Below, piece after piece: positions 1-6,223 of a stretch of DNA of 64,000 nt. The notes beneath the pieces are model-generated. The model did no database searches. It worked only from the letters and a program-made list of their open reading frames with translations, and was not told the origin of the DNA. The stretch spans positions 1 to 64,000 of the forward strand of contig OZ025747.1 in NCBI GenBank assembly GCA_964019335.1, given 5' to 3'. Within the stretch, counting starts at the first letter, position 1, and each line of letters starts with the position of its first letter. The stretch is from Diplonema japonicum (lineage: Eukaryota; Protista; Euglenozoa: Diplonemea). The position numbers and the translations under genes are program-made.

Positions 1-854
1 GGTTGCGGGTTTGCGGGTTTGCGGGTTTGCGGGTTTGCGGGTTTGCGGGTTTGCGGGTTTGCGGGTTTGCGGGTTTGCGGGTTTGCGGGTTTGCGGGTTT
101 GCGGGTTTGCGGGTTTGCGGGTTTGCGGGTTTGCGGGTTTGCGGGTTTGCGGGTTTGCGGGTTTGCGGGTTTGCGGGTTTGCGGGTTTGCGGGTTTGCGG
201 GTTTGCGGGTTGCGGGGTTTGCGGGTTTGCGGGTTTGCGGGTTTGCGGGTTTGCGGGTTTGCGGGTTTGCGGGTTTGCGGGTTTGCGGGTTTGCGGGTTT
301 GCGGGTTTGCGGGTTTGCGGGTTTGCGGGTTTGCGGGTTTGCGGGTTTGCGGGTTTGCGGGTTTGCGGGTTTGCGGGTTTGCGGTTTGCGGGTTTGCGGG
401 TTTGCGGTTGCGGTTTGCGGGTTTGCGGGTTTGCGGGTTTGCGGGTTTGCGGGTTTGCGGGTTTGCGGGTTTGCGGGGTTTGCGGGTTTGCGGGTTTGCG
501 GGTTTGCGGGTTTGCGGGTTTGCGGGGTTTGCGGGGTTTGCGGGGTTTGCGGGGTTTGCGGGGTTTGCGGGGTTTGCGGGGTTTGCGGGGTTTGCGGGGT
601 TTGCGGGGTTTGCGGGGTTTGCGGGGTTTGCGGGTTTGCGGGTTTGCGGGGTTTGCGGGGTTTGCGGGGTTTGCGGGGTTTGCGGGGTTTGCGGGGTTTG
701 CGGGGTTTGCGGGTTTGCGGGGTTTGCGGGGTTTGCGGGGTTTGCGGGGTTTGCGGGGTTTGCGGGGTTTGCGGGGTTTGCGGGGTTTGCGGGGTTTGCG
801 GGGTTTGCGGGGTTTGCGGGGTTTGCGGGGTTTGCGGGGTTTGCGGGGTTTGCG

Positions 855-856
<2 letters not shown>
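1..856 (+). repeat. Telomere-like tandem array (TTTGCGGG)n, shifting mostly to a (TTTGCGGGG)n 9-mer variant from ~520 to 856
   Basis: Directly visible 8-mer/9-mer periodicity, G-rich on the + strand, ending abruptly at a T43 tract. Telomeric function is not proven and the polarity is unexpected for a left chromosome end. Confidence 0.9.
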
Positions 857-899
<43 letters not shown>

Positions 900-906
<7 letters not shown>

Positions 907-970
907 GGGACTTGAGAAAATAAATAAAAAGGGGGACTTGAGAAAATAAATAAAAAGGGGGACTTGAGAA
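900..970 (+). repeat. About 2.7 tandem copies of the 26-mer AAAAAGGGGGACTTGAGAAAATAAAT next to the putative poly(A) tail
   Basis: Copies at 900-925 and 926-951, partial copy at 952-970. Confidence 0.9.
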
Positions 971-1629
971 TGTTTTTTTTTTTTTTTTCTTCAAAAGACA
1001 CACAAGGCACGATAAATCTTAAGAGAAAATAAAAATATTCCAAAACAGACAATCAAGTCCCAACCTGGGAGGAAGGCATGGGTTTCTCTTTTTCTTTATG
1101 GGAGGGAGAGGGGAAGAAGAAGAAGCAACTCCAAATGATAAAAATTCAAAAATAAAAATCTCAAAAAAGGCTTAAAAGAAGAAGAGGCAAATTCAAAAAC
1201 ATACTAGGGAGGAATGAGTGGGGCAGGGGGTAAAATTTAGGAGGGGGAAAGAGGGAGAATCAAAAAAGGGGAAAGGGGCAGAGTGACCAATGTCCATGCG
1301 AAAAAGCATAGAGCGGGGGAAGAAGAAAATCAAAAACAGGAAAAACACATCACCACAAAAGAAAAAAGAAAAAAAAAAAAAACGTCGACCGAGATGGTTC
1401 CACTTCAAAAAGAAAAAGAAAAAGAAAAACAGAAAAATAAAAAAAAAAAAAAAAAAAAAGGAAAAAAAAAAAAAAAATCTAAGTGGTTCTATCTAGCCTG
1501 GCCGTTGTAGCACCTGTTCCCTATTCTTTTATTTTTCCCTTTTTTTTTTTTCTCAGAAAAAAAAAAAAAAAAGTTTCACATCTTCCTATGGCGGGGGGGG
1601 GGAGAACAGCCCCCCACACCCCCGCTGGC

Positions 1630-3426
1630 CTATCTGGCCAGCGAGCCTTTGGACCTCTTCTTGTGGGGTATGTGCCCCACCCGTGCCCTCCCCGACTCGA
1701 GCTGCAGCCAAGCCACCGCACTGTTCACCGGGGCCCAGTTCTCCTTGTTGCGCACCTTGACCGTGTCCCGCACCAGGTCGTCGCCCCCCAGCTCTTCCAT
1801 CAACCTGTGCTCCGCCAAGAACTTGAACTGGGGCCCGGTCATCCCCTTGAGCCCACCCCTGCATATGTTGGCTTCGACCACGGTGCCATCCGCCCCCGTA
1901 CCCTTCAGATAGATGTAGCCACCCTCCACACAATCCGAGTCAGTACTGGCCGATCGGGCCCGGGCCCGCTTCTTGTCCTTCTTGCTCCACTTCAGCTCTT
2001 CCAGGGTGGGGAGGTCCGTGGCAACCACCTCAGGCCGCCTCTCCCTGTCTTCCTCCTTCTTCCGGGCCAACAGCCCAAGGTACCTCTCAAAGGAGGCGTC
2101 CTCGAACAACCCCGGGACCGTCACCACCGCTGACTGCAGGTCGACCTCTTCAACACCCATCTTCCGCAGATGGTCCTGGACAGTGCGCCTCGTCTCCTTC
2201 TCGCAGGGCCCCCTCCCCTCGTAGACGTCGAGGGTGACCTTCCTTCCATCCCTCACCCACGCCTTCACTTTGATCAGGTCCTTGACCTTTCCCACTGGGG
2301 CCCTTATCCTTGCGTCGCACCTCTCCAAGAACTCACGTAGTGTCACCTTGGTAGCGCCGGCTCCCGCCGCAATGCCCACTACCCCTTCCTTCCCCGGTGT
2401 CGGGTGGTGTCTGCACCCCCGGGTCTGCAACTTGACCACCCTCCATGCCGTTTCCAGAGTCCCCTTGAGCACGCCACCCTTGAAACGAACAGGTTGCACC
2501 GCCGAACACCCACACGCATACGTGATCTGGAAATCCTGGACCGTCCTCGGGAACTCGAACTCGCGGTATGTTTCCGACTTCTGCACCTCACAACCCACAA
2601 TGCGGCTGCGGCGCTCTCCGTCCGACCCACCTTCCAAGCTTGCGAAGTACTGCTTTACCATCATGTATCCAAGTCCAGCGATACCAATCTGGCCAGCCAT
2701 AGCCACCTCCAGTGGAACACCCAACGACTCGGCCTTCGCAAGAAGCATCTCCTCAGCCCTCTCCCTTCCAGGGTCCGTCCCTTCTTCAAGGATGATCTCC
2801 ACCCGGCCCTCGAACTGGATGATGAACTTGAGCAGTCGGTCCCCCGGCCTCGCCCTCAGTGGCACCATCGCTCTCGGAATTGGGATGCCCATCACCACAT
2901 CAATCGGGTCAAGCTGAACGAAGTCTCCCCCTACTTCCACCTGCTGTTCCCTTTCCGGTGCCCCGACTCCCATCAGCTGATCTCCCTCCGGCGTCTGGAT
3001 CCCACCCCTAGGTGTGTCAGGCCCCGACTGGCTGCCTCCGCTCGGTGCGTTCCCGCCCTCTTTGGTCCCTTCGGGGGCGTCATCCGCCTGCGGCTTCAGA
3101 GTCCTCCCACCGCCCTGTCTCTTCGCAGCTTGTTCCCTACAGAATTCGCTCACGGTCATCTTCCTCGTAGCAGTTGTCGCACTCTGGTCCCCCTTGTTCG
3201 AGTCCCTCTGGGCCTCCGTATCCCCCTTAGGACACTGGTCCAAGGTCTGGTTCACCGCAGCGTCAGTCGCCCCTTGTCTCTTCCCATCTTCCTGGGCCTT
3301 CAGGTCAAGCTCCCCTCCCTGCCCAGCCCTCTCGCTGGATCCTGTTCCGGCCATCTCCGTGTCTTCTCCTCCCGGCGAGGCTGCTTCGAGTCCTGCTCCC
3401 GCTTTCCCTTGTGTTCCACCCTCCAC
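1630..3426 (-). CDS. Retroelement downstream ORF (598 aa) of unknown function, probably the frameshifted C-terminal continuation of the RT-RLE protein
   Basis: Long open frame with the same purine-rich composition as the RLE ORF, which it overlaps. Adding one C near 3450 joins the two frames (..KKDLDA-PQQRKAEPVEGG..). Confidence 0.65.
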   Translation of the reverse strand: MEGGTQGKAGAGLEAASPGGEDTEMAGTGSSERAGQGGELDLKAQEDGKRQGATDAAVNQTLDQCPKGDTEAQRDSNKGDQSATTATRKMTVSEFCREQAAKRQGGGRTLKPQADDAPEGTKEGGNAPSGGSQSGPDTPRGGIQTPEGDQLMGVGAPEREQQVEVGGDFVQLDPIDVVMGIPIPRAMVPLRARPGDRLLKFIIQFEGRVEIILEEGTDPGRERAEEMLLAKAESLGVPLEVAMAGQIGIAGLGYMMVKQYFASLEGGSDGERRSRIVGCEVQKSETYREFEFPRTVQDFQITYACGCSAVQPVRFKGGVLKGTLETAWRVVKLQTRGCRHHPTPGKEGVVGIAAGAGATKVTLREFLERCDARIRAPVGKVKDLIKVKAWVRDGRKVTLDVYEGRGPCEKETRRTVQDHLRKMGVEEVDLQSAVVTVPGLFEDASFERYLGLLARKKEEDRERRPEVVATDLPTLEELKWSKKDKKRARARSASTDSDCVEGGYIYLKGTGADGTVVEANICRGGLKGMTGPQFKFLAEHRLMEELGGDDLVRDTVKVRNKENWAPVNSAVAWLQLESGRARVGHIPHKKRSKGSLAR

Positions 3427-4608
3427 CGGTTCCGCCTTTCGCTGCTGCGGGCGTCCAGGTCCTTCTTCGTCTGCTCCAGAAGGGCATCCAGCTGGTGGGC
3501 CACCGTGATTGGGGGTCCGCCTCCCTGTCCCTTCACTTCCCTCCCGGACGACTCCTCAGCTTCGGTGGTTTTTTCATTGCCGAAGGAGTCCTCTGTGAGG
3601 TCAGTGTTGGATTCAGTGTTGGGTTCGTTGTTCGCTTCCTCGTTGTCCTTTTTTTCCTCTTCGCCGTCCGGTACCGGGGGCCCTGGATCCAACTGTACAG
3701 GCCCTTTGACTAACAGCGCCCCTGCTATCGATCTCATCATGGCCGTTGACACCTCTTGGACCACGTCACCTCTTGGAGCCCGCGCAGCTATGCTCCTGGA
3801 CAGTTTCTTCGTGAGGTAGACTGCTGCCTCCCCGAACCCCCCAAAGGTCTCCATCGCGAAAGGTACAAAGGCCACGCGTGTCTTGGCGAGCTCCGCCTCA
3901 TACTTCTGGCGCTTGTAGTGTTCCGCCTTCGCCGCTGCGTATCCCGCAGTCTTCGCCGCCTGGTTGACACAAGACTCGTTCCTCGGGTGCACGATGACCA
4001 CGTCCATAGCCATTGGGCGGGAACCCCCCACCCCACCTGGGAAGAACACGTCCGCCGGGCGCTGGGACGACCCCGGGATCAGCCCCGTCTTCTCCATCGT
4101 TGCGCTCACCCCGGCCCACTGACAGTGTCTGTGGATGGTCTCCTTCACCCGGTCGTGCCTCGCAATCCTGGCGTTGCCGCATCCCTGGGCATGGTCACCC
4201 CATACGTCCATCCCCTCAGTCTTGCACCTCGGGTCGTGGCAGCTCTCACCCTGCTTGTAGACCGGAGCCCCCAACCACCACTTGATCAGAGCCCCAAACT
4301 CGTTGTCCGACAGCTGGTTGTAGAAGTCAGGCGTCGCCGTCAACCACGCTCCCGCATAGTGCATTGACTCCGACATCAACCTCGCTCTCGAGCGTGCATC
4401 TGCTTTCGCCAAGAGGTCCTCCAGCGCCTTCTCATCAAGCACCCTAGAGAGCCACCTCTGGCTGCAGATGTGGGGGGCCTTGGCCACCATGTCGGGTGTA
4501 ATCTGCATGCCGCCCTTCGTCCTGTTGAACCACTCGAGCCAGCTCCCCCATACACCCCCTTCCAGCCCATGTTCGTATTTGGGATCCAGCTCCTTGCACA
4601 GCTTCAGC
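3300..4608 (-). pseudogene. C-terminal part of a CRE-like retrotransposon protein: zinc knuckle plus restriction-like endonuclease; RT core lost by 5' truncation
   Basis: Motifs ARLMS..AGAWLTATP, CHDPRC..DHAQGC (CCHC), RHD, RPADV..MDV, KRQKY, FVPFAMETFGGFG. The ORF-track N-terminus (4609-4673) is only read-through across the repeat and flank. Confidence 0.85.
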
Positions 4609-4639
4609 TGCGGGTTTGCGGGTTTGCGGGTTTGCGGGT
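4609..4639 (+). repeat. Short remnant (~3.8 units) of the TTTGCGGG array at the element's 5' junction
   Basis: TGCGGG-TTTGCGGG-TTTGCGGG-TTTGCGGG-T. Confidence 0.95.
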
Positions 4640-6223
4640 CATTTTTCTTTCCTTTATAACTTACCTTTCTCATTCTTTGTATTTCCCCCCCCCCCCCCCC
4701 CCTGTTTTTACTGTACTTTATTGGCAGGTTGTTTTAAAAAATAACCTAACCCAACAAGACACCCCAATAGAACCAGAAAATCTGTCAGAAAAGACTACCT
4801 GATGGGCATGGCTGGCAATATTAGGGTTGAAAGGTCCCAGGATTGAGGTGAAGAAGGTGCCACCACTGACACACTGCTATTGTTGGCAAGTACTGGAGGT
4901 GAAGGAGATTGCAGCCAAGAAGAAAGACCAACTGCTATTGCTGGGCAAAGAACAAAAAAAGTGAAATAAATTCCAAGAAAAAAAAAAAAAAAAAAGCAAG
5001 TAAGAGGTAAAAGGTTTGAATACATAGGTTAAATGGACTATTAAATTCTTTTTTGATTAAGTAACCACAGCTGGGTACTTTAATTTTCAACCCATTTTGG
5101 CAACACTGGGACTAAAAAGTTTTGATTAGGAGATTTACACTTTCTTTATTAGGTTTAAAAATTAAATAGGTTCAGAAAAAAACTAAAGAATAAATTCAAA
5201 TGTGTGAAATTGTGTGTTTCCTGAAAAGTGAGTTATAAGGTGGTAGAATGATATAAATCTATCTAAATTTTCGGAAGAAAGTTGATTCCTTGAAGAAAAA
5301 AAAATTCGATTAGGTAACCACAGCTGTTAAAAACCTACTTCAAGGAGCATTTTGCTTATCATCACCCAAAATTAGGCCAAAATTCCAAAAATACCATTCT
5401 AAAATGAAGCTTGATTTTGTGATTTTCAGGTGGCCATTTAGACCCTAAGGAAAATTCCTAAAGTGATTTTTGAAAGATTTTTTTCAGTCCAAGTGGGGTC
5501 AAAACTTTCTATTGGCTGTTCAGAATTCCATTTTCAGGACCAAATTGGGTGTTCAAAAAAAATTTTTTTTTTGCCCTCCCAGTGTTGTTATGAGAATGAG
5601 TTGCCCCCCAGAAATTTTTGGATTTTTACTTACTTTTTACTTCAGAATATAGTTTAGAGATGTGTATTCCACCTAAACACCTTTCTGAACTTTTTGGTTT
5701 GCAGAAATGGGTTTATAAGGTGTTTTTAATATAAATTTCATGATTTCTGGCTATTTCCAGAAAAAAAATTTTGGGGTCAAAAATGGCCAAAGTGACCCCA
5801 AGTTTGGGGTCCCCTGGGAAAAAAAAAATTTTTTTTTGGCCAAAAATTTCCAAAAAAGTCTGTTTTGAGGGTGCTATATGAGTGAGGGTCCCTAGAAAAA
5901 AAAAAATTTTTTTTTGCCCCCCTGCCCCCCCAGCCCCCCCACCCCCCCACCCCCCTGGGTTTTTTCCTGTAACAACACTGCTCCACAGCCTGGGAGAAAA
6001 ACTGTTAAAATTTCCCTTGGAAAAAAAAGGGCATGAAAAAAGTCTTGGCATGATTTGGTATGTTAAGATTTCCAAGCCCTGCTCCCTGCTTTCCATGTGG
6101 CAGGCCCCCCAGCCCAAATAAGTACAACCCAAATAAGTGTATTCCAAATAATTCTTTTTTTTTGGAGCCCAAACACCCCCCCTCCACTGCCCAAATAAAG
6201 GGATTATTCAGGGGGCCCCTTTA

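Follow-up and report, generated by a model that had tools for sequence, protein, structure and literature searches.

The first 4,639 nucleotides of the window, the 64,000-nucleotide stretch at the start of Diplonema japonicum contig OZ025747.1 that was analyzed here, are a chromosome left end carrying a dead, 5′-truncated retrotransposon copy in an octamer array (Table 1). The copy lies on the minus strand and retains 3.7 kb of a ~9.3-kb non-LTR retrotransposon; it is recognized as 5′-truncated because other copies extend upstream of position 4606. Its two ORFs are a single ORF broken by the 7-bp deletion after 3447, with an additional in-frame 1+17-bp deletion near 3764-3776, where the alignment to Logan contigs has loose ends (3764/3776). 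The 3′ UTR ends in a 26-bp tandem unit, with 2.8 copies here (899-970) and 1-17 in other copies of the element. A preliminary description had placed an RLE-type retroelement within a telomere-like array, with the same repeat on both sides, a CCHC knuckle and a restriction-like endonuclease (RLE). This is borne out: octamer arrays lie at 3-859 and 4609-4639, both junction sequences read exactly as first given, and the CCHC and RLE motifs, located at 3831-4241, are all conserved in alignment with relatives from four other taxa. The junctions are those of the assembly; public runs were covered as short Logan contigs, in which no read spans 856/857 or 4608/4609. An Rfam search gave one chance match only. 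The octamer remnant of the window falls exactly at one edge of a dispersed repeat ~1.35 kb long.

Table 1. Features at the left end of the window (positions in the window).
Feature	Position	Strand	Remark
Telomere-like array	1-856	+	63 TTTGCGGG + 35 TTTGCGGGG units
Poly(A) tail, A43 (T43 on the top strand)	857-899	-	Directly abuts the array
A/T-rich 3′ UTR	900-1629	-	
C-terminal part of polyprotein: low-complexity linker and ~420-aa orphan domain	1630-3426	-	Downstream of the endonuclease
Polyprotein segment: linker, CCHC, RLE motifs	3300-4606	-	Residues ~1827-2260 of intact copies
7-bp deletion after 3447	3440-3450	-	Splits one ORF into two frames
Restriction-like endonuclease motifs	3831-4160	-	RHD, RPADV, D, K, ETxGG
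CCHC motif	4179-4241	-	C-x4-C-x11-H-x3-C
5′ junction	4607-4608	-	Two extra bases, GC, between element and upstream octamers
~3.75-3.9 octamers	4609-4639	+	Centromere side of insertion; remnant of array base
Subtelomeric flank	4640-5988	.	Member of ~1.35-kb dispersed repeat family; at least 40 copies, 83-96% identity

Tandem Repeats Finder describes the 8-bp array at 3-859 as (TTTGCGGG)n with 103 copies and 97% matches, and its 9-mers are restricted to the proximal part (470-848). The array cannot be put down to chance, since the genome contains 5,552 occurrences of the 32-mer made of four octamers and none of a reversed control. This 32-mer lies on the + strand at contig starts and on the - strand at contig ends. 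Octamer arrays start at base 1-24 in 10 of the 14 left ends examined and close all seven of the right ends examined, always in the same orientation, and the genome listing of the 32-mer adds four further contig ends with like-oriented arrays. No TTAGGG array is present in the assembly. Because the top strand of the terminal array is G-rich, the strand whose 3′ end lies at the terminus reads CCCGCAAA; the top strand carries TTTGCGGG at left ends and CCCGCAAA at right ends, whereas in the canonical arrangement it is the G-rich strand whose 3′ end points outward. The 3′-terminal strand at D. japonicum ends is thus C-rich, the reverse of canonical polarity and, to our knowledge, of every telomere described. 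The repeat nevertheless shares terminal position and addition to broken ends with telomerase-type repeats, the termini in both respects being those of the assembly rather than of reads. A metagenome scan for four octamers gave nothing informative, its 28 matches being short interstitial microsatellites of unrelated contigs.

Intact copies of the element are ~9.3 kb long, begin with the spliced leader (SL) and encode a single ~2,800-aa protein with AlkB, OTU, C2H2-type zinc fingers, reverse transcriptase (RT), CCHC plus RLE and an orphan C-terminal domain. These features were read from natural copies, without a consensus or repaired copy. In natural full-length copies, Pfam detects RVT_1 (60 bits), 2OG-FeII_Oxy_2 (51 bits) and OTU (47 bits), and the zinc fingers were recognized by residue patterns; Pfam and PDB sequence searches with the window ORFs alone gave no matches, so that the domains are visible only in the full-length copies. 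No Pfam model matches the CCHC/RLE part. For the orphan domain, there was no Pfam match, an Atlas search was empty, a search of 1.84 billion representatives matched solely the same species' own protein, and a single-sequence AF2 model was unusable (pLDDT 38). A protein search found 447 RT-RLE relatives. The RT domain, followed downstream by CCHC and PD-(D/E)xK motifs, places the element among RLE-type LINEs, as do the lack of LTRs, the poly(A) end, the variable 5′ truncation and a 17-bp target-site duplication in one copy. From these motifs, the polyprotein is predicted to have endonuclease activity.

The SL at the head of the element is the product of trans-splicing of the element's own RNA; the element is transcribed, trans-spliced and polyadenylated. 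Across 26 copies, a 3-kb ORF segment is >99% identical with only 80 variable sites, shared variants fall at codon positions 1/2/3 in the ratio 3/3/14, and the frame is open over the last 1,000 codons in 20 of the 26. As judged from these sequences, the family is young and probably still active.

The genome holds at least 40 near-identical copies, almost exclusively at contig ends. Minus-strand copies lie within 12 kb of coordinate 1 in 23 contigs, with no plus-strand copy at low coordinates, and plus-strand copies occur at high coordinates in 14 contigs; there are three exceptions to the pattern, and seven plus-strand copies were placed at contig ends by their cut-off flanks. Element heads, recognized as SL followed by GTC, show the same distribution, the 14 on the minus strand all <80 kb from the contig start and the 13 on the plus strand at high coordinates. 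The poly(A) end always points toward the terminus and is continuous with the CCCGCAAA strand. The tandem SL RNA genes, in which GTA follows the SL, have other locations; no mapped copy coordinate coincides with the positions found for them. The family is therefore telomere-associated, keeping to chromosome ends and to one orientation as expected of telomere targeting, and the repeat homing suggested by the preliminary description, for which copies scattered through the genome or sitting at SL RNA genes would have been contrary evidence, extends to dozens of ends. That description missed the clustering at the proximal edge of arrays, the SL head and the 9.3-kb length.

Junctions tabulated across copies do not support the earlier proposal of a fixed cut at the octamer's TTT. 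The window junction, A43|CCCGCAAA, and two A7|CCCGCAAA junctions fit the TTT register; A10|TCCGCAAA, A33|CGCAAACC and ...CCAACG|CAAACCCG lie off it, and four copies have 13, 17, 18 or 57 nt of non-repeat DNA between poly(A) and array. Poly(A) tails are 10-63 nt long across other copies. In the C19 copy, the filler is a 17-bp target-site duplication, which indicates that priming there began in non-repeat DNA; this is the one clear duplication, the other short fillers standing without a 5′-flank comparison. Together with variable poly(A) length, variable 5′ truncation and SL at the 5′ end, it belongs to the hallmarks of retrotransposition seen across copies. In 13 copies with a readable 5′ flank, octamers upstream span 0-31 bp (31 bp in the window, 10 bp in the C48 copy, absent in the other 11), versus 100-1,100 bp downstream; the 5′ flanks of C37, C105-right and others lie outside this survey, as do internal copies of the element in C81, C53 and C107. 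Insertions thus sit at the base of the array. Insertion into long arrays should leave long upstream tracts, and since none are seen, boundary targeting, deletion of upstream repeats or nearly lost telomeres must be invoked. In C75 and C105, octamer read-through has been copied ahead of the poly(A).

Chromosome ends also record loss and repair. Copies without their 3′ ends are joined directly to octamers, two of them with 2-nt microhomology, indicating that repeats are added to broken ends, and some new copies directly abut an older copy at its eroded 3′ UTR or poly(A) tail. The poly(A)|octamer junctions could equally arise by repeat addition to a free end, an option that the preliminary description overlooked. 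Telomerase is probably the capping enzyme. A probable TERT gene, the candidate on C41, matches Telomerase_RBD at 28.4 bits (cut-off 25; 24.2 bits on a partial ORF) and has a T motif and motifs A, B′ and C read by eye; PDB and word-index searches gave no match to it.

The explanation we favor overall, and regard as likely, is a boundary-targeting RLE retrotransposon that inserts at the octamer base and is later eroded and re-capped. The polyprotein would nick DNA, most likely at or near the boundary between subtelomere and array, and reverse transcription would be primed from the 3′-OH of the G-rich strand. Priming from this strand would make the sense strand continuous with the CCCGCAAA strand and direct the poly(A) toward the terminus. 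The geometry requires a G-strand 3′-OH as cDNA primer, and in this respect the G-rich strand named in the preliminary description stands. A second, staggered cut ~13-18 bp away would then give a short target duplication. The cut position would not be fixed within the octamer, with the array base or very short arrays as target, and ends would later erode into elements until octamer addition, probably by telomerase, re-caps them.

A strict nick in or next to the octamer TTT, anywhere in the array and with TTT pairing to the poly(A), is improbable. Many RLE elements are site-specific (PMC4640811), which counts for such a nick, as do the window junction TTTGCGGG|T43 and the two A7|CCCGCAAA junctions; the other registers, priming sites 13-57 nt within non-repeat DNA in four copies (one with the target-site duplication) and the fact that no copy has >31 bp of upstream octamer count against it. 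Rather less unlikely, though still doubtful, is that copies are added only at nearly or wholly lost telomeres, with a G-strand 3′-OH some tens of nucleotides or less from the chromosome's physical end as primer and telomerase extending the poly(A) with octamers, which would make the element a back-up device for end healing. Such capture near the end accounts for the lack of upstream octamers, or their span of <32 bp, in all 13 of 13 copies, for the varying register of poly(A)|octamer junctions and for copies joined directly to eroded older ones; octamer addition to arbitrary 3′ ends is demonstrated, and the 13-18-nt fillers would represent the last stretch of the G-strand. On the other side, direct signs that an insertion met a physical end are lacking, a conserved endonuclease would be superfluous, and the orientation is opposite to classical priming from a terminal 3′ end as in the Drosophila elements.

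Spread mostly by subtelomeric recombination or break-induced replication of blocks of element and array, instead of by repeated retrotransposition, would account for ORF identity >99% and for arrays rearranged by internal deletions and fused fragments, and exchange of this kind is documented for fungal MoTeR arrays (PMC7367193). Copies nevertheless differ in poly(A) length, number of 26-bp units, 5′ truncation, flanks and read-through segments, and the SL heads and the one target-site duplication show RNA-mediated events. As the main route we consider recombination quite unlikely, but the near-identity of copies could be due to it in part. It is very improbable that the octamer arrays are an internal satellite at assembly breaks and not telomeres. 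Their polarity is opposite to that of all telomeres we know of, and the termini rest on the assembly, not on reads; against this stand the constantly oriented arrays at the left, right and additional ends listed above, an assembly free of TTAGGG arrays and broken elements capped by octamers at arbitrary points.

The family has its closest counterparts in MoTeR1 of Magnaporthe oryzae, FoTeR of Fusarium oxysporum and Cnl1, which likewise have RT followed by RLE; the likeness is one of architecture and placement. Fungal CRE-group elements are confined to chromosome ends in one orientation, form head-to-tail arrays and carry tandem repeats within the element (PMC7367193; PMC12857005), all of which the D. 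japonicum element shares. An insertion of MoTeR1 one repeat from the telomere/rDNA junction is on record (PMC7367193). In both systems, the 3′ end of the sense strand is continuous with the C-rich telomere strand, which implies that the G-rich strand primes. Since repeat polarity is reversed in D. japonicum, its element has the same orientation to the repeat strands and the opposite one to the chromosome end, so that the 3′ end faces the terminus here and the 5′ end in fungi. The two accounts cited mention no poly(A) tail for the fungal elements and describe telomere-like repeats at one terminus of MoTeR1 (PMC7367193; PMC12857005); the D. japonicum element, in contrast, has a poly(A) tail and an SL head. 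Adjacent MoTeRs are parted by telomere tracts, whereas adjacent D. japonicum copies usually are not, and the polyprotein is 2.5 times larger than the fungal one, with AlkB, OTU and the orphan C-terminal domain.

The trypanosomatid elements SLACS, CZAR and CRE1/2, of the CRE clade, share euglenozoan hosts, RLE architecture and N-terminal zinc fingers with this family. NCBI gives the label 'SLACS 132 kDa protein' to a relative in D. papillatum, with 46% identity across 58% of the query, and this label is the one pointer to possible CRE-clade membership. They insert into SL RNA genes, whereas D. japonicum copies are at contig ends. R2 has RT and CCHC/RLE in common with the element, as well as read-through RNA able to supply target-matching 3′ ends. 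Sequence similarity to R2 is weak (E about 1e-7) and limited to the RT, where three solved R2 proteins match; its target and size are different, and so are the added domains. SART1 and TRAS1 of Bombyx mori, LINEs specific for telomere repeats, share poly(A), fixed orientation and 5′ truncation, and SART1 reads toward the chromosome end as does the D. japonicum element; both are members of the R1 clade, cut precisely in TTAGG by means of an APE-type endonuclease and insert throughout arrays. Telomere targeting is described for SART1 (PMC7265360). Head-to-tail LINE arrays with eroded terminus-facing ends are shared with HeT-A, TART and TAHRE of Drosophila. The Drosophila elements have their poly(A) joined to the terminal 3′-OH and facing the centromere, and their 5′ ends erode; in D. 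japonicum, the poly(A) faces the terminus, the 3′ ends erode, and the elements occur alongside a simple repeat and a probable TERT. Priming at the terminal 3′ end in the manner of Drosophila was rejected, because all ends examined show the opposite orientation.

Insects, fungi, Giardia and green algae are known to harbor telomere-homing retrotransposons; in the literature searched, we found none described in diplonemids or any euglenozoan. Diplonemids belong to the most abundant protists of the sea. Within one 62-Mb genome, insertion, erosion and re-capping have occurred naturally dozens of times, and the family thereby allows tests of how the telomere base is located by an RLE element, whether it is drawn to telomeres that are short or lost, and how ends heal. 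It also frames a separate puzzle, a telomere repeat with reversed strand polarity. We tentatively consider it possible that a C-rich 3′-terminal repeat and a LINE, integrating where repeat and subtelomere meet or at nearly lost telomeres and then re-capped, keep the ends through an interplay of telomerase and LINE. If true, such end maintenance would be the mirror image of the Drosophila arrangement.

Element copies cluster at contig ends in a single orientation. The D. japonicum assembly (62.5 Mb, 132 contigs), in which the window forms the left end of contig C100, contains at least 40 copies that match the window copy at 97–99% DNA identity. Using the 3′ half of the element as the mapping query, minus-strand copies were found <12 kb from coordinate 1 on 23 contigs, and 14 contigs have plus-strand copies at high coordinates, 7 of these copies being placed at contig ends by cut-off flanks. 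No plus-strand copy was seen at low coordinates among the mapped 3′-half matches. The exceptions to this distribution number three (C115 at 68 kb, C81 and C53). Contig C115 has further copies at its true end and an interstitial 96-bp octamer tract just distal to the internal copy (L007:898-993, ~67.5 kb from the contig start), which may be a former telomere turned internal or a scaffolding join. Element heads (spliced leader followed by GTC) are distributed likewise, with 14 on the minus strand, all <80 kb from the contig start, and 13 on the plus strand at high coordinates. Stretches within 12 kb of a contig end make up only ~5% of the genome, so this clustering is not due to chance. The sense strand always points to the terminus, and it forms one continuous strand with CCCGCAAA.

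Features of the window copy, the full-length polyprotein and the junctions with octamer arrays (a slash marks the junction)
Feature	Location	Strand	Details
8-bp tandem array	window 3-859		103 copies, 97% matches
T43 run	window 857-899		directly after array
Poly(A)-tailed element copy	between octamer tracts	minus	
3′ UTR, 730 nt, A/T-rich		minus	ends in 2.8 copies of 26-bp unit
Second ORF	window 1630-3426	minus	
Upstream ORF	window 3300-4673	minus	overlaps second ORF
Restriction-like endonuclease motifs RHD, RPADV, D, K, ETxGG	window 3831-4160	minus	upstream ORF
C-x4-C-x11-H-x3-C (CCHC)	window 4179-4241	minus	upstream ORF
Second octamer tract	window 4609-4639		3.9 units
AlkB-type 2OG oxygenase	polyprotein domain 1		51 bits
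OTU protease	polyprotein domain 2		47 bits; C2H2-type pattern on each side
RVT_1	polyprotein domain 3		60 bits
CCHC/RLE module	polyprotein domain 4		
Extension C-terminal to endonuclease	polyprotein domain 5		~700 aa
3′ junction	window		A43/CCCGCAAA
3′ junction	C105 left		A10/TCCGCAAA
3′ junction	C21		A33/CGCAAACC
3′ junction	C84, C9		A7/CCCGCAAA
3′ junction	C40		A7CCAACG/CAAACCCG
Capped 3′ truncation	C79		...GTGCC/CGCAAACC
Capped 3′ truncation	C84 right		...AAGC/AAACCCGC
Capped 3′ truncation	C118		...T12/CCCTGAAACCCGC
257-bp fragment	C75		joined directly to octamers
Doubly truncated copy	C13		joined directly to octamers

Natural full-length copies measure ~9.3 kb from head to A-run and carry a single frame, 2,826 codons long, in which codon 25 is the first Met. 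The window copy is 5′-truncated, because all other matching copies run on upstream of window 4606, and its two ORFs are a single ORF in other copies; it has lost 7 bp after 3447, and a further deletion, of 1+17 bp, is in frame. At the 3′ end of the element (window 899-970), the number of 26-bp tandem units ranges from 1 to 17 between loci, L033 (the C105 left end) among them. Neither window ORF searched alone matched Pfam or PDB. Conservation of all the CCHC and endonuclease motifs is seen when relatives from Symbiodinium, Ephydatia, Plutella and Diplonema papillatum are aligned. For the RT-RLE segment 447 relatives were found, with identities of up to 40%, including a D. papillatum protein labelled SLACS-like and dinoflagellate, sponge and moth proteins; solved R2 proteins match only weakly. 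The sole match to the globular part of the post-endonuclease extension among 1.84 billion representatives was the same species' own protein, the Atlas returned no match for the extension, and its single-sequence model was unusable (pLDDT 38). The ~420-aa orphan domain after the endonuclease corresponds to window 1633-2892 (minus strand), where this poor AF2 model nevertheless suggests repeated beta-beta-alpha modules.

Intact copies start with a 38–39-nt sequence (e.g. L036:9745-9782:-, L038:9913-9950:-). Because this sequence elsewhere precedes GTA, in tandem genes ~350 bp apart, it is identified as the spliced-leader exon, which makes a trans-spliced, polyadenylated mRNA the transposition template. 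The spliced leader of D. papillatum is 39 nt long (PMC10161547). Just inside the polyprotein ORF start of full-length copies are three CCCGCAG heptamers (L036:9615-9660, minus strand), each differing by one base from the CCCGCAAA telomere unit. They recall the telomere-like repeats at MoTeR termini and may be chance occurrences in GC-rich coding DNA.

The last 1,000 codons are open in 20 of 26 copies, and a 3-kb stretch of the ORF has only 80 variable positions. Variants common to at least two copies fall 3/3/14 at codon positions 1/2/3; singletons are spread almost evenly. This pattern fits selection on the lineages yielding new copies, with neutral decay once a copy has inserted.

The flank at window 4640-5988 is not unique DNA, being a ~1.35-kb dispersed repeat with at least 40 copies at 83–96% identity. 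Its edge coincides with the octamer remnant, and 15 nt of it (window 4712-4726, plus strand) match the spliced leader in its 3′ part. Word depth in public runs X1 and X2 reaches millions at window 4444-4791 versus 1e5 over the element, the peak likely arising from octamer, poly(C)-run and spliced-leader-like words. Should X1 and X2 derive from RNA, the element would be well represented in them, although they provide short contigs only, from which expression cannot be read.

The window array includes 63 TTTGCGGG and 35 TTTGCGGGG units and every 9-mer is proximal, a shift from 8-mer to 9-mer toward the proximal side; the C21 array has an extra variant, CCCGCGCAAA. At the terminus the 3′ end belongs to the CCCGCAAA strand, so the polarity of these telomere-like octamers is reversed (window 1-856), as it also is at L004, L008, L012, L013 and L027 and at right ends L005, L010, L017, L018 and L021. 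We found no reversed telomere-repeat polarity in the literature searched, no mention of telomeres or transposons in the published D. japonicum YPF1604 assembly paper, and no (TTAGGG)4 in the whole assembly. A metagenome scan for four octamers was uninformative, its 28 matches being short interstitial microsatellites of unrelated contigs.

Junctions between copies and arrays place the insertion site. Downstream octamer arrays span 100–1,100 bp; on the 3′ side, five copies run into other sequence and three directly into the next copy. Four copies have non-repeat DNA between poly(A) and array (13 nt in C37, 17 nt in C19, 18 nt in C105 right and 57 nt in C31). The 17 nt of C19, the final subtelomeric sequence in front of the array, also lie directly upstream of that copy's 5′ end and thus form a target-site duplication. 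Octamer read-through ahead of the poly(A) in C75 and C105 right indicates that their source copies sat in arrays. Among 13 copies with a readable 5′ side, upstream octamer sequence amounts to 31 bp in the window and 10 bp in C48, and the other 11 have none, adjoining varied non-octamer DNA or remains of older copies (the eroded 3′ UTR for C9; an A-run or poly(A) for C93, C13 and C75). Together, the upstream octamer lengths and fillers place insertions within ~-57 to +31 bp of the array's proximal edge. The cut position in the octamer is not fixed, which contradicts the preliminary description's proposal of a cut at the TTT of the octamer; its suggestion of priming from the G-rich strand agrees with our reading.

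The copies most likely arose by target-primed reverse transcription from a G-strand 3′-OH at the array base, with a staggered second cut, after which the chromosome end would erode and be re-capped. The main alternative, less probable overall, has copies inserting where a telomere is nearly lost, with the array then re-extended from the poly(A); it accounts as well or better for the variable register and the absence of octamers upstream. Element orientation excludes priming of the classical kind, from the terminal 3′ end. Recombination surely reshuffles the arrays, but it cannot account for the private tails, truncations, spliced-leader heads and target-site duplication.

Several copies lack 3′ ends and have octamers joined on directly. 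These copies, cut off at arbitrary 3′ points, lie at L018:5100-5200, L021:4960-5040 and L030:200-260 and as distal copies in L031 and L034, and they bear the signature of repeat addition. The C79 and C84 right cap junctions have 2-nt overlaps, which look like repeat addition onto broken or eroded 3′ ends. The added strand is CCCGCAAA, because only the strand ending 3′ at the terminus is extendable. A divergent TERT candidate with a 1,086-aa open frame is present on C41 (L039, G000:C41:532474-535800; match C41:533974-534300), and its putative telomerase RNA partner would have a template of the UUUGCGGG type. Telomerase_RBD scored 28.4 bits (cut-off 25) in one search versus 24.2 bits on a partial ORF, where RVT_1 scored 24.5 bits, below its 29.6-bit cut-off. 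Inspection by eye picked out motifs T, A (AYDxI), B′ and C, and neither PDB nor the word-index protein search gave matches. The candidate is a probable TERT.

The fungal MoTeR/FoTeR elements and the diplonemid element have in common an RT-RLE core, confinement to chromosome ends, head-to-tail arrays and a sense 3′ end continuous with the C-rich strand, and one recorded MoTeR1 insertion lies a single repeat from the telomere junction (PMC7367193, PMC12857005). They differ in that MoTeR/FoTeR 5′ ends face outward; adjacent MoTeRs have telomere tracts between them (PMC7367193, PMC12857005). The diplonemid element is like MoTeR/FoTeR relative to the repeat strands and inverted relative to the chromosome end.
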